A DNA stretch of 64,000 bases from Bugula neritina. Taxonomy: Eukaryota; Animalia; Bryozoa. The stretch is from positions 620,001-684,000 of the forward strand of contig OZ037765.1 in NCBI GenBank assembly GCA_964035545.1, read 5' to 3'. Made by a program: the position numbers and the translations under genes. Within the stretch, counting starts at the first letter, position 1. Each line of letters opens with the position of its first letter. Under the pieces are notes generated by a model that was not told the DNA's origin, searched no databases, and worked only from the letters and a program-made list of their open reading frames with translations. Below, one piece after another: positions 22,580-59,996 of this stretch.

Positions 22580-22646
22580 TTAACTCAGTGCACATTTGGA
22601 TGCTATTTCGGCAGCATAGGTATTAGTTTCAGGTTTGCTGCAGCCA
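22580..22646 (-). pseudogene. Orphan 3' end of an i-type lysozyme last exon
   Basis: Translates GCSKPETNTYAAEIASKCALS*, homologous to Lys1 GCSKSATLSYAAKIASQCGLS*. Confidence 0.85.
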
Positions 22647-22862
22647 TGATATTTTATTCACTTTATTCCAGCAGCTACAGAACAGTGCAAAACAAAGAAA
22701 CATATTTTTGTTTAATTTTTTGTAAAATTAATTACTTAATTTGTATTAAAATGGTTTTAAAATACAACACATTATGAAATTTATTACATGTTATTGTACT
22801 AAAAAAAAGTTTTCACAAAAGCTGTACTGCTTTTTCAATCGACATGAGCGAGTTAACAAGTT

Positions 22863-24598
22863 TTAACTCAGTCCACACTGAGATGCTATTTTAGCAGCAT
22901 AGCTGAGAGTAGCAGATTTGCTGCAGCCACTGGGTCCTCCATTGTGAAGTCTGCCATAGTCTTGACAGGTCAGCTGACTCGTGGATTTCCCGAGATGACG
23001 AGCACATGTACTTGCATATCTGGACATGTAATTCTGGACACATGTTCTGGAGCATGAGTCACTGGCAGCACAACTTTCCCAGTCTGTCAGTTAAACAAAC
23101 AGAATATGAGAACACAAAACTCTGCAATCACTGAATTCTATATTTCTTTGCAAATGCATGTAAGACTTATGGATGTTTGAGTTACTTTGATAAGCTGTTT
23201 GAATTCAAACTTTAGATTTACTGAGTTTGTTCAACACTACAATATGCTATTAATTTATAAAATCTACTGTTTGAAAATATTTTTCATATGTTAGTTCTAT
23301 ATTTACCTTACAAAATGTCGTTTTATTGATTACTTTTGTCATTCATATTTTATGAAAAGCAAAACTTCAATAAATCTTAAAAAGTTCAATTATATAGAAA
23401 ATGCAAAGCAAAAAGTATTGTCATGTATTATTTACAGACACATATAAGTTAAATTACTATTAAAATTATTTTATGTAATTTAATTCACAAATATTGTAAG
23501 AATTTCTGTAAAAATAAAAAGTAGAAATGCTATTGAAAAAAGTTTTGCAGTTAGTGAACTCTCACAGATTAAAGCTTTACTTTGTTTAACCCAAATCAGT
23601 ACTGCAGTACTGATTTGGGTTAAACATGTTTTGCAGATTTCATGTAAACATTCACTAAATTTTGCTATAAATAACTAAAATTACTATTTAAATAAATGAT
23701 ACCAATGACAATAAAAATGACTCATCTCACCAGATCCAGGTTGACCACAGTCAATGTAATATATCTCCTTTATCTGATATCTACCACACGAGTAAGAGTT
23801 GACGTCCCAATTGCATCCACGTCCACCATTTTCTATCTGAAAACACAAATATGTTGTTTCATGAAGGTGTCACACATTATTTTAATTTTAGTTTTCTACA
23901 TTTTTTTCAACTTGCAAAGAACAGATTATTAATATTATGGTGAAAGTAAATAAGTTATTTTAATACACAAAGTAAACTTAAACTAGAAACTTACCCGACC
24001 AATGCAACTCAGACAGGCACTGCTTACTGAAATAAAATAAATAACAACTTGAAATTTCTGTATTCTTGAAAACTTCTACATCTTATTGAGTTTATTTGTA
24101 AACTTTTAGAGCATGTGTTTTCCATTTGAAACAAAAGATTTGACAGCATACCAATATATAGTTGACATAATAAAAATAAATAAATGCAACAAATGGGTTA
24201 TAATAGTAATAATGAATATCTCTATTAAGAGAAGACAAAATACTTAAGAATTTGAGAGCTGTTATAAAAATAGAAAGCCGATATTTAGTAAACTGCAGCA
24301 GAATAGAAGTTAGCAGTTGTTTACTATATAGTATACAGTTATCTATATATTAATACTAATCTTCACGCAATTTATATTCCTTCGTATATTTAATTATTGT
24401 AAAAAAAATGACACAATGATTCAAAAAGTGTGCATGCCGTGTTTGCTTACCATATGCTATGATTATTGCAAAACCTGCTACAATTTTCTATACATTTAAA
24501 ATAAATCTACAAGAAATATTTGTATACTTACCGTATGCTTGAGTCTGGGAGACGAAGGCAAGAGAAAGACAAACTAACACAACTACAGACAGATGCAT
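22863..24598 (-). CDS. Lys1: i-type lysozyme/destabilase, 141 aa; exons 24598-24532, 24026-23995, 23836-23731, 23083-22863
   Basis: Signal peptide MHLSVVVLVCLSLAFVSQTQA; VSSACLSCIGRIENGGRGCNWDVNSYSCGRYQIKEIYYIDCGQPG...TCQDYGRLHNGGPSGC; catalytic Glu and Asp and HNGGP retained. Confidence 0.95.
23583..23626. repeat. 44-bp spacerless palindrome in Lys1 intron 3
   Basis: TGTTTAACCCAAATCAGTACTG|CAGTACTGATTTGGGTTAAACA. Confidence 0.95.
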
Positions 24599-24677
24599 GT
24601 TGACAGGCAGAGACAGGTGGTTGAAAGTGACAGGCTCAGTTAGTGCTATAGGCAGGTGGTTGAAGGTATCTAAACTG

Positions 24678-24997
24678 ATGGCAATTTCTCTGTCTTTGCA
24701 GCTTCTTTTATATTGTAGAACAACCAATCAGGGGCTAAGGTTTGGTCACTAAAGTAATTTCCTTGTTTGATGTAGCGGATGCATTGTTACACAGTTTACT
24801 ATACCTTTGAGTTCAACTGAAAACAGAACAAAGCTGATGAGTACAAAAAAGCAACTCACACGTTACGTTGTTATACTCTTAATATGAGTAGCTTGTCTAT
24901 AAATTATGTTATTACGTACTTACCAGCTATCAAACCTTAGCCCCTGATTGGTTGTTCTACAATATAAAAGAAGCTGCAAAGACAGAGAAATTGCCAT
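24678..24997. promoter_or_regulatory. Lys1 core promoter (CCAAT + TATA) and its 67-bp inverted duplicate
   Basis: Arms 24678-24744 and 24931-24997 both contain CTGATTGGTTGTTCTACAATATAAAA, a motif conserved upstream of Lys2, Lys4, Lys6 and Lys7. Confidence 0.8.
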
Positions 24998-25190
24998 GGT
25001 TTTTACCAATAGTAGCTATAGCTACTATTGGTAAAAACCTGTTTTTTAAATTGTTGCCAAATAAAAAACATGCAAAACCTGAAATGGTTAAACAAACAGA
25101 GCATCTGTTGGCTTTTAATTCAGCTTCCTTTCAAGTAAATGCTAGCCCAATAAATAAAATTAATAATACACTAATATATTCCTAAATTGT

Positions 25191-57975: not shown

Positions 57976-58385
57976 ACTAGGATTGTTTGATTATGTAATA
58001 ACAGCTAATTATACACAATATTTAATTTAAATGCTTTCTGATTAAACAATAACTTATAAACAACAATTCCTAAGTTTAAGTATGTTTTGAATTTACTAAA
58101 TAAATACTAAAGCAGTTTTACTTTCTGAATTAAAATAAAAGATAGCAAATGTATTACCTAAATTTGTTATGCTCTTTTCAATAACCCTCTAAATAATGGA
58201 GAAATTCTTCTTTAAAAACATAAAACATTTAAAACATGACATCAATGACATCTGGCATATTGATATAAGCACATGTCACAGTGATATTATATCTACGACC
58301 TAATTTTAGAGCATGAAAGATTAGCTAATTATTAACTTATATAATAGTTCCACTATATATAAGTAGTTGTTGATCAGAAATAAGC

Positions 58386-59047
58386 TATATATACATATAT
58401 ATATATATATATATATATATATATATATATATATATATATATATATATATATATATATATATATATATATATATATATATATATATATATATATATATAT
58501 ATATATATATATATATATATATATATATATATATATATATATATATATATATATATATATATATATATATATATATATATATATATATATATATATATAT
58601 ATATATATATATATATATATATAGTAAAATGAGTGTTTATAAAACGTTACTAGAGTGCTCTATAGAAATAAATCTAGAGCGTAAACATTAGAAGAAATAA
58701 AATGAGATTTGATTATTATAATGGCATTTATTACTAGTAGTTTCGTACACAAGAACGATGTGCACTCATCAGATAAATTAGCCACTATAGTGGCTAATTT
58801 ATCTGATGAGTGCACATCGTTCTTGTGTACGAAACTACTAGTAATAAATGCCATTATAATAATCAAATCTCATTTTATTTCTTCTAATATATATATATAT
58901 ATATATATATATATATATAATATATATATATATATATATATATATATATATATATATATATAATATATATATATATATATATATATATATATATATATAT
59001 ATATATATATATATATATATATATATATATATATATATATATATATA
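58386..59047. repeat. (TA)n - 202-bp perfect palindrome (58687-58888) - (TA)n cassette
   Basis: Centre GCCACTA|TAGTGGC with no spacer; long TA tracts on both sides. Confidence 0.95.
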
Positions 59048-59301
59048 CATCTCATGCAGTCCTATAGACATAGCAGTAGCAAATCCAACATTGTTATGGT
59101 ATTTGTTTATTACAACATTTAAATTTGTATGGAAATAATGTTTTTATTTATAGTATACTTCTATTTATAGATTCATGAAACTTGTTTTAAAAAGAACGCA
59201 TCATTTTTTATAAAAATATCACAGAATAGTTTAATAGCAGGCTATGAGCTTGCTAATATATATAATATGTTTACTTACTACATAATTATATGTTTACTTA
59301 C

Positions 59302-59964
59302 TGGTAATCCCCACATCCAACCTCAGCCTTTCCATTTCTCTCACAGCTAGCTGGTGGTCCTTCTTTTCTCTACAACATCCAGGATGATGCAATGCTCATA
59401 TAATATTCCATTGTAATTGTCTAGAATATCAGCAGTTCTTAAACTATATCTGCAGTAAAAATGCTTTGCGATGTTCAGCTTATTATTTAATTTTTTAACT
59501 GGTGTATTTCCTATGCATACTGATAATTGAATTCAGGCTCTCCATTGGTTTCATTCACATTACAGCCTATCTGTAAGTGTGGTAACTGTGAACACATGCA
59601 GCAACAATTCTTAAATAGATATTTCATTTTTCTTTGCTAAGGAAAAAATATAATAAAGGATTTAATCAGAATTTTTATTAGCAGTAGCTAATTATCACCG
59701 TGGCAACATCATCACACAACTTAACATTAACTTGTTTATGGAAATATATAACGAGATACCATTACTCATTGATATGCTCCCATTGTTTTTTGTTGCAAAT
59801 AAGAGAAGTTTTAACAAACAATCATTAAATTCCTGTCTATTTTTATAGTCTTTTATGATTTTAATTCTATTTAAATTGTTATTTTAAAGACAGACTTTTA
59901 GTCTGTTTCAGTGAACACTTACCCTGCCAATACACCTGATATACATTCCCTACTGACCACACTG
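59302..59964 (-). pseudogene. Lys8: inverted, internally deleted copy of Lys3 (part of exon 2, intron 2, part of exon 3)
   Basis: SVVSREC(+2 nt)IRCIGR|...RKEGPPASCERNGKAEVGCGDY; intron near-identical to 31954-32502; 58260-59280 matches the Lys3 3' flank 33420-33785. Confidence 0.9.
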
Positions 59965-59996
59965 CTAGAATATCATCTCAGTGTGGACTGAACTAA
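59964..59996 (+). pseudogene. Orphan 3' end of a lysozyme last exon
   Basis: GCT AGA ATA TCA TCT CAG TGT GGA CTG AAC TAA = ARISSQCGLN*, followed by sequence resembling the Lys6 3' flank. Confidence 0.7.

Follow-up and report, generated by a model that had tools for sequence, protein, structure and literature searches.

The stretch of DNA analysed here, the 64,000 nucleotides from 620,001 to 684,000 of contig OZ037765.1 in the Bugula neritina assembly GCA_964035545.1 (hereafter the window), carries a 37-kb array of i-type lysozyme genes of the Pfam family Destabilase. Loci were located by tblastn with exon peptides, and the gene models were checked by hand and then numerically; they comprise six full-length loci (Lys1 to Lys4, Lys6 and Lys7) and four fragments, ten in all (Table 1). 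Based on the gene models and the comparisons presented below, we consider it likely that the array combines canonical enzymes and a gene that has only just died with Asp-less lysozyme-fold paralogs which have been kept by selection and are probably non-enzymes.

The six full-length loci follow one plan of four exons separated by GT-AG introns in phases 1, 0 and 1. Exon 1 consists in all six of 5' untranslated region (5'UTR) and a hydrophobic, signal-like peptide, and the products of the array are predicted to be secreted. Exon 2 is small, 32 nt in length but 50 nt in Lys3, and codes for x-x-x-A/E-C-x-x-C-I-G/I-R/K, so that the residues CIGR, CIGK or CIIK precede the catalytic Glu. Exon 3 begins with Ile, Val or Leu followed by this Glu, which is thus its second residue in each of the six loci, and carries the Asp loop; exon 4 carries the His motif. 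Two alternative readings are not upheld, namely a 32-nt exon 2 in Lys3 (its actual extent is 31904-31953) and a "CLCFQ" ahead of the Glu, which would be read-through of the intron-2 acceptor. Each of the five intact genes has an uninterrupted frame and 12 Cys in the mature protein, and the profile PF05497 matches the exon-4 peptides of all six loci at 37-54 bits against a cut-off of 26.2. The first-pass annotation had counted ten lysozyme-derived loci in 37 kb, assigned them to the i-type lysozymes, described a four-exon plan, signal-like peptide and Cys scaffold common to the six full-length loci, and quoted the active-site motifs of each of these; the tblastn matches, gene models and profile scores agree with it on all of these points.

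For comparison we used a second B. neritina assembly, GCA_010799875.2 (contigs L001, L031-L033 and L053); below, B. neritina and the prefix Bn refer to this genome. The window and these contigs are colinear, but non-coding identity is only 77-86% and synonymous divergence (dS) between orthologues is 0.22-0.37, which places the window in a sibling species, or else a deep lineage, within the B. neritina group and makes the second genome usable as an outgroup. The nearest public proteins are those of the bryozoan Bugula neritina. Ratios of nonsynonymous to synonymous divergence (dN/dS) are pairwise throughout and rest on about 140 codons.

Active-site residues

Residues are numbered as in destabilase, the columns having been fixed by aligning the B. 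neritina Lys6 protein (P0157) to the structures 8BBU, 4PJ2, 3AB6 and 2DQA. In destabilase Glu34 and Asp46 form the catalytic dyad and Gly44-Ser51 a flexible loop, while Ser49/Ser51 and His112 belong to a Ser-His-Glu isopeptidase triad that is itself a proposal (PMC10126035). The Asp site lies six residues ahead of the loop Cys and corresponds to Asp30 of the Tapes japonica lysozyme, whose Glu is Glu18. The B. neritina Lys6 protein matches the solved i-type lysozymes with E values of 1e-28 to 1e-32, with the Glu and Asp columns aligned, and the enzymes of T. japonica (2DQA) and Meretrix lusoria (3AB6) and the leech destabilase (8BBU/8BBW) belong to the same PF05497 fold family.

Lys1, Lys2 and Lys6 carry the motifs IE/LE...W/L-D-V/L-x-S-x-S-C-G and HNGGP, and thus share with the solved i-type enzymes the Glu/Asp dyad, the Ser-x-Ser-Cys-Gly loop and HNGGP. 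The bryozoan proteins as a group differ from those enzymes in having 12 Cys, without the third Cys of the CxxCxC start (here CIGR) and the Cys after GG. Lys3 (IEEG...ERNGKAEVGCG; HFGGP), Lys4 (IESG...WVGGSYLCN; HKGGR) and Lys7 (VESF...WSIDSNLCN; YAGGP) depart further, in that they are without the Asp and without one or both loop serines. In both Lys4 and Lys7 the QIK substrate-side motif is replaced, as is the loop serine Ser51. Net charge is about +10 in Lys4, which has a cationic C-terminus, and about -4 in Lys7, which has a 12-residue C-terminal extension.

The division into canonical genes and intact Asp-less paralogs proposed in the first-pass annotation is supported by these residue states and by the gene models. 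That annotation also held that Lys3, Lys4 and Lys7 had each rebuilt the Asp loop and the His motif while keeping the Glu. This stands for the loop, but the His residue itself is kept in Lys3 and Lys4 and is replaced, by Tyr, only in Lys7. The Glu is indeed present in all three, but it does not serve as a sign of retained chemistry, since the B. neritina orthologue of Lys4 has Val in its place.

Canonical genes and gene turnover

We infer that Lys1 and Lys2 are ordinary muramidases, because they combine a complete Glu/Asp dyad, the Ser-x-Ser loop and HNGGP with strong purifying selection; dN/dS is 0.13 between Lys2 and BnLys2 (on L001) and 0.27 between Lys1 and Lys2. The third canonical-type gene, Lys6 (dN/dS 0.28 against BnLys6), bears two lesions, a -1 nt change at the exon-1 donor that shifts the phase of the intron and a 20-nt tandem duplication in exon 4 (47426-47468). 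In B. neritina the orthologue (P0157, 141 aa) is intact, and Lys6 thus appears to have died recently.

Other members have come and gone as well. BnLys2 and BnLys3 on L001 are the orthologues of Lys2 and Lys3. A canonical B. neritina gene (P0002) is represented in the window by its last 51 nt only, and an inverted Lys3 fragment sits in its place; another (P0004/P0153) has no window counterpart. Conversely, no counterparts of Lys1 and Lys7 were found on the B. neritina contigs compared. The description of the locus as a birth-and-death array is therefore upheld, and we regard it as a lineage-specific tandem cluster that, judging from these comparisons, evolves via duplication, inversion, partial duplication and gene death.

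The Asp-less paralogs

Lys3 differs from its B. neritina orthologue with a dN/dS of 0.08, the changes in exons 1 and 2 being nearly all synonymous. In the exon-4 tree, which is poorly resolved, Lys3 and BnLys3 share a long stem and have tips near zero. The low ratio and the long stem with short tips together suggest that Lys3 was remodelled long ago and has been conserved since. This is the pattern that a settled new function would leave, and Lys3 is probably a non-lytic protein of the lysozyme fold.

Lys4 and Lys7 present a different picture. They are colinear inverted duplicates whose exons are mutually closest in the window and whose homology stops at 37797; to judge from intron similarity, the pair derives from a Lys6-like ancestor. 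Divergence (K) between them is 0.125, 0.056 and 0.144 in the three introns as compared to 0.33 in exon 3 and 0.32 in exon 4, so that the exons have diverged two to five times as much as the introns. The pattern is reversed between Lys1 and Lys2 (exons 0.07-0.19, introns 0.5-0.6). Nonsynonymous divergence between Lys4 and Lys7 (dN 0.283) exceeds the intron K of 0.125 by a factor of 2.3 (Fisher p = 7e-8). A profile in 60-nt windows shows a central tract of 92-98% identity, within which the roughly 80 nt that code for the segment from the Glu to the Asp loop fall to 71-74%, and the stretch between the His motif and the stop codon, which makes up the last third of exon 4, is at 42-63%. In the DNA alignment the Lys7 loop has been lengthened via a 12-nt microduplication of a GGTCAAT-like unit. 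A third donor copy as the source of the loop divergence was rejected, since neither loop segment has a second copy in the 216-Mb genome. The central introns may have been homogenised in part, as identity varies from 0.74 to 0.98.

The scaffold of the two genes has been kept. All 13 Cys columns are conserved, the five coding indels are all multiples of three, and every splice site is intact. In a simulation of neutral change, with random mutations at half the load observed, no more than 0.16% of trials per lineage retained both an open frame and every Cys.

An outgroup for this pair is provided by a Lys4-type orthologue at L053:1977-4033 (VXIV02001247.1), an annotated Destabilase gene of four exons and 153 aa, which was absent from the protein-search results and surfaced by walking the contig upstream of BnLys6. 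In BnLys4 both the Glu and the Asp are replaced by Val. Since WVGGSYLCNKYA is common to BnLys4 and Lys4, the change from Asp to Val appears to be older than the species split. The GLGP...GPV C-terminal extension of BnLys4 is present in Lys7 as well. Given these states, Lys4 would, after the duplication, have kept the old loop and rebuilt and shortened its C-terminus to a cationic tail, and Lys7 would have kept the extension, rebuilt its loop and turned acidic. Exon 4 of Lys4 and BnLys4 has 51% amino-acid identity at an intron K of about 0.22; dN as compared to intron K is 0.244 versus 0.218 for Lys4-BnLys4 and 0.343 versus 0.241 for Lys7-BnLys4. With its scaffold frozen, the Lys4 clade thus seems to evolve at no less than the neutral rate, which argues against pure decay and equally against a constrained active site.

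One might suppose that Lys3, Lys4 and Lys7 are muramidases or chitinases still, the lost Asp being replaced by a neighbouring acid (the Glu of KAEV in Lys3, the Asp of SIDS in Lys7) or by a single-acid mechanism. The Glu is after all kept in the three window genes, and in Lys3 and Lys7 an acidic residue lies three positions from the old Asp site. However, the Lys4 loop (WVGGSYL) holds no acidic residue whatever, the loop serines and QIK motif are replaced in both Lys4 and Lys7, and the loop is the fastest-changing part of these genes, unlike a constrained active site. BnLys4 is moreover without the Glu, which suggests that catalysis is not what selection maintains in the Lys4 clade. Retained enzymatic activity in the three paralogs therefore strikes us as quite unlikely.

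Promoters, insertions and expression

The CCAAT-TATA core promoter is kept in all six genes, and their 5'UTR hardly varies. The core promoter, CCAAT (ATTGG) followed by TATAAAAG, lies about 95-115 nt upstream of the ATG, and the approximately 60 nt that precede the ATG are almost invariant across the six paralogs, even in Lys3, whose coding synonymous sites are saturated relative to the others. This stretch holds the motif TTCAACCACCTG (E-box-like CACCTG) twice. No consensus RNA structure was found in the conserved 5'UTR (-1.0 kcal/mol, no covariation), and the window has no Rfam matches.

The common promoter and 5'UTR bear on a proposal of the first-pass annotation, a decoy role against bacterial inhibitors of the PliI type; by soaking these up, Lys3, Lys4 and Lys7 would shield Lys1 and Lys2. 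Indirectly, such a role would suit paralogs that are putatively secreted, lie next to the active enzymes under the same promoter and 5'UTR, and evolve fast, as in an arms race. A decoy, however, should keep the surface to which the inhibitor binds, presumably the cleft with the catalytic residues, and it is the cleft segments that have been rebuilt, differently in each of Lys3, Lys4, Lys7 and BnLys4. We take 4PJ2 to be a PliI-lysozyme complex with the inhibitor bound in the cleft; our structure match shows the lysozyme chain only. We found no literature on lysozyme-inhibitor decoys. The proposal finds no support here, the remodelled segments being cleft-lining, and we hold it to be highly improbable.

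Expression was followed in Logan contigs from runs whose RNA status was guessed, with mapping on positions 55300-58100 (Lys7) only. Part of the Lys7 locus is present in 16 runs, of which four were mapped. In runs X1, X2 and X6 contigs lie on no part of the Lys7 gene body but the repeat in intron 2; in one run the 5'UTR and exon 1, which Lys7 shares with its paralogs, are covered as well, and the loose contig ends there continue into other paralogs. A word share of 0.12 in the "organism A" runs, considered as a sign of Lys7 expression, was traced to the intron-2 repeat and not to the exons. This repeat is found in contigs of all four mapped runs, where it is abundant, at 95-99% identity, and its ends continue into dissimilar sequence, which marks it as a multi-copy element that is probably transcribed. 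Its 108-aa antisense open reading frame (ORF) has no Pfam match, and the repeat is probably a truncated retroposon tail. The evidence for transcription of Lys7 leans slightly to the negative.

Relatives of Lys4 and Lys7 were found neither in two scans of JGI metagenome contigs nor by word-indexed protein searches with Lys4 exon 4, P0002 and P0151, and there was no Lys4-type match among the best 150 of a profile search over 1.84 billion representatives.

Destabilase loci elsewhere in the genome and other features of the window

A census with the Destabilase profile yielded 29 exon-4 loci in the genome, an assembly of 216 Mb in 321 contigs, six of them in the window. The remaining 23 comprise about 17 in a 60-kb array on C2, three at C2:28.3 Mb and three singletons. 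The C2 loci are nearly all without the Asp, and most have His-Lys or Lys-Lys in place of Ile-Glu; the one canonical C2 gene lies at about C2:12786000, and at least 19 further Destabilase loci, mostly on another chromosome, lack the canonical residues. Since the C2 loci are nearly all non-canonical, the putative canonical enzymes (Lys1, Lys2 and the one C2 gene) appear to be a minority in the genome. For one dyad-less gene of the C2 array, a Logan contig carries the full-length ORF in spliced form (P0021).

The array at C2:12.73-12.79 Mb forms a separate clade in the exon-4 tree (100/99 support). A grouping of Lys4 and Lys7 with the C2:28.3-Mb loci in that tree was flagged as long-branch attraction and not used. 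The C2:12.73-12.79 Mb array resembles that of the window in genome, family, tandem layout, loss of catalytic residues and retention of the scaffold, but it differs in that its members have mostly changed Glu to Lys or to His-Lys as well as losing the Asp, whereas the C1 array has canonical enzymes and its disabled members lost the Asp only. The remodelled genes of the window seem to represent a second, independent route to the same outcome.

Several further features lie in the window. Just upstream of Lys1 is a 191-nt inverted repeat (25236-25426 and 25694-25884; 98% complementary, 267-nt spacer), with a 43-aa ORF in either arm, perhaps a small element of the foldback or MITE type. Downstream of Lys4 lie about 20 copies of an AT-rich 24-nt tandem repeat (34708-35203), and about 17 copies in inverted orientation lie downstream of Lys6 (48040-48467); the two arrays may delimit a segment that was duplicated or inverted. 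The Lys6 region is flanked by direct repeats of about 0.9 kb (41961-42829 and 50850-51764; 82-96% identity), 8.9 kb apart. Several long ORFs of 300-564 aa on the minus strand at 5088-9932 have no Pfam matches.

Table 1. Lysozyme-derived loci and associated features (positions are those of the window unless preceded by C1 or C2; residues are those at Glu34, Asp46, Ser49, Ser51 and His112)
Feature	Position	Strand	Description	Residues
Lys1	22863-24598	-	exons 24598-24532, 24026-23995, 23836-23731, 23083-22863; intact, canonical; exon 4 PF05497 E=2.5e-14	E, D, S, S, H
Lys2	28573-29902	+	exons 28573-28639, 28964-28995, 29143-29248, 29682-29902; intact, canonical	E, D, S, S, H
Lys3	31461-33260	+	exons 31461-31530, 31904-31953, 32503-32614, 33040-33260; intact	E, G, E, G, H
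Lys4	35626-37657	-	exons 37657-37585, 36861-36830, 36662-36554, 35849-35626; intact	E, V, S, L, H
Lys6	45581-47654	+	canonical-type pseudogene	E, D, S, S, H
Lys7	55442-57975	+	exons 55442-55508, 56225-56256, 56952-57072, 57719-57975; intact	E, S, S, L, Y
"Lys5"	40274-40423	+	exon-4 relic, truncated, frame broken (tblastn)	
Exon-4 tail relic adjoining Lys1	22583-22648	-	tblastn E=7e-5	
Inverted partial Lys3 copy (intron 2 and start of exon 3)	59301-59964	-	95-97% identity; inverted repeats; tblastn 59366-59301	
Exon-4 tail of gene intact in B. neritina (P0002)	59943-59993	+	window 59962-61850 matches L031 11685-13549 (downstream synteny)	
Lys4/Lys7 divergence island	36581-36662 (Lys7 partner 56952-57045)	-	segment from Glu through Asp loop; 71-74% identity	
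Retroelement reverse-transcriptase fragment	37705-38421	-	Pfam RVT_1 E=1e-15	
Repeat in Lys7 intron 2	56336-56861	-	526 nt; absent from Lys4; ORF 56505-56831	
5'UTR/upstream stretches	24599-24690(-), 28481-28572, 31369-31460, 37658-37740(-), 45489-45580, 55350-55441			
Destabilase loci outside the window	C2:12729000-12787000, 12529000, 28321000-28346000; C1:10369000; C2:7611000			

Discussion

Based on the comparisons above, the history of the Asp-less paralogs may be reconstructed as follows. The loss of the Asp and of both loop serines from Lys3 would be old, and the gene would since have been conserved as a new lysozyme-fold protein. Lys4, Lys7 and BnLys4 would form one clade descended from a Lys6-like ancestor, in which the Asp gave way to Val before the species split. 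Members of this clade strictly preserve their reading frame and splice sites, the signal peptide and the disulfide scaffold, and the segments that line the cleft (from the Glu to the Asp loop, and from the His motif to the C-terminus) change at or above the neutral rate. As the likeliest model, we propose that these are secreted proteins, catalytically disabled or very weak, that act via binding or charge: Lys4 would be a cationic effector resembling an antimicrobial peptide, and Lys7 an anionic variant whose loop is new. Microbial targets would be the source of diversifying selection on them. What the data show directly are gene structures, residue states, selection signatures and orthology; secretion, the loss of muramidase activity and any binding function of the Asp-less paralogs are predictions from sequence.

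A more specific version of this history can also be imagined, namely that the Lys4 clade (Lys4, Lys7 and BnLys4) consists of hypervariable binding proteins on a fixed scaffold, the cleft having been rebuilt, through diversifying selection, to recognise or neutralise variable microbial molecules. We regard this as unlikely. If it were true, the targets might be, for instance, cell-wall variants, lysozyme inhibitors or symbiont surface molecules, and the clade would constitute a lysozyme-derived module of recognition or counter-defence. Bugula is known for its bacterial symbiont.

A number of observations weigh against the interpretation of Lys4 and Lys7 as selectively kept non-enzymes. Their pairwise dN/dS is 0.85 and does not exceed 1. 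Synonymous divergence of their exons (0.33-0.48; fourfold sites 8/33) is also above the intron value, and because of this mutation may account for part of the exon excess, or gene conversion may have evened out the introns. Immediately next to the Lys4 core promoter, about 140 nt upstream of the ATG, lies the reverse-transcriptase fragment, and the 526-nt repeat is inserted in Lys7 intron 2. No contigs on Lys7 exons 3 and 4 and no splice joints were found in the four runs, a negative that is weak because the runs are contigs of guessed RNA status and cover the Lys7 locus only, and no transcript-derived Lys3, Lys4 or Lys7 proteins were found in the protein collections searched. Finally, the loss of the Asp alone is no proof that all glycosidase activity has gone.

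Several of these points would be equally at home in an alternative in which Lys4 and/or Lys7 are functionless and drifting to pseudogenes, their loops have decayed neutrally, and the genes that matter are Lys1, Lys2 and perhaps Lys3 alone. The dN/dS of 0.85, the want of exon-3 and exon-4 contigs, the retroelement beside the Lys4 promoter and the repeat in Lys7 intron 2 all fit such decay, as does the death of the neighbouring Lys6. Neutral decay, however, cannot push the divergence of exons above that of their own introns. Nor does it readily account for the conservation of every Cys column, the in-frame indels and the intact splice sites, or for an intact orthologue in a species at an intron K of about 0.22; in the simulation, the neutral probability of keeping all Cys without a stop is at most 0.0016 per lineage. 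We therefore find decay of Lys4 and Lys7 improbable; very recent silencing of one copy, Lys4 or Lys7, is possible.

We favour the interpretation that Lys3, Lys4 and Lys7 are maintained by selection and are not decaying. The retention of the Asp-less paralogs is supported by the dN/dS of Lys3, by a Lys4/Lys7 scaffold and frame preserved beyond neutral expectation, and by the B. neritina orthologue.

There are precedents for lysozymes of this sort. All insect I-type lysozymes are without the catalytic dyad and yet conserved, and these, together with some crustacean ones, are likewise dyad-less lysozyme folds kept by selection and presumed to be non-muramidases (PMC13736114). In insects the loss is ancient and family-wide, whereas the bryozoan array is young and has active and putatively disabled copies side by side; furthermore, the Glu is still present in three Asp-less genes of the array, and in one subclade the rate equals or exceeds the neutral one. 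A similar course, from duplication through loss of catalytic residues to a new binding role, was taken by alpha-lactalbumin and the sperm lysozyme-like proteins (PMC5104373), but they belong to the c-type family and to vertebrates, and any new function of the bryozoan proteins is putative. The change from lysozyme to non-enzyme that we describe is thus a new case and not an unprecedented one. We found no literature on Bugula lysozymes.

While the practical value of these genes is modest for now, the array presents, within 37 kb and with an outgroup at hand, what appear to be several stages of such a change side by side: enzymes, a fresh pseudogene, an old and stabilised non-enzyme, and a young, fast-diverging pair. 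It can therefore be viewed as a compact natural experiment on the passage from hydrolase to pseudo-enzyme, and it would extend the "lysozyme that no longer cuts" from the arthropods to the Bryozoa. Should an arms race with microbes indeed lie behind the divergence of the Lys4 clade, the Lys4-type proteins would be candidate immune molecules of a new kind, acting in recognition or as effectors.

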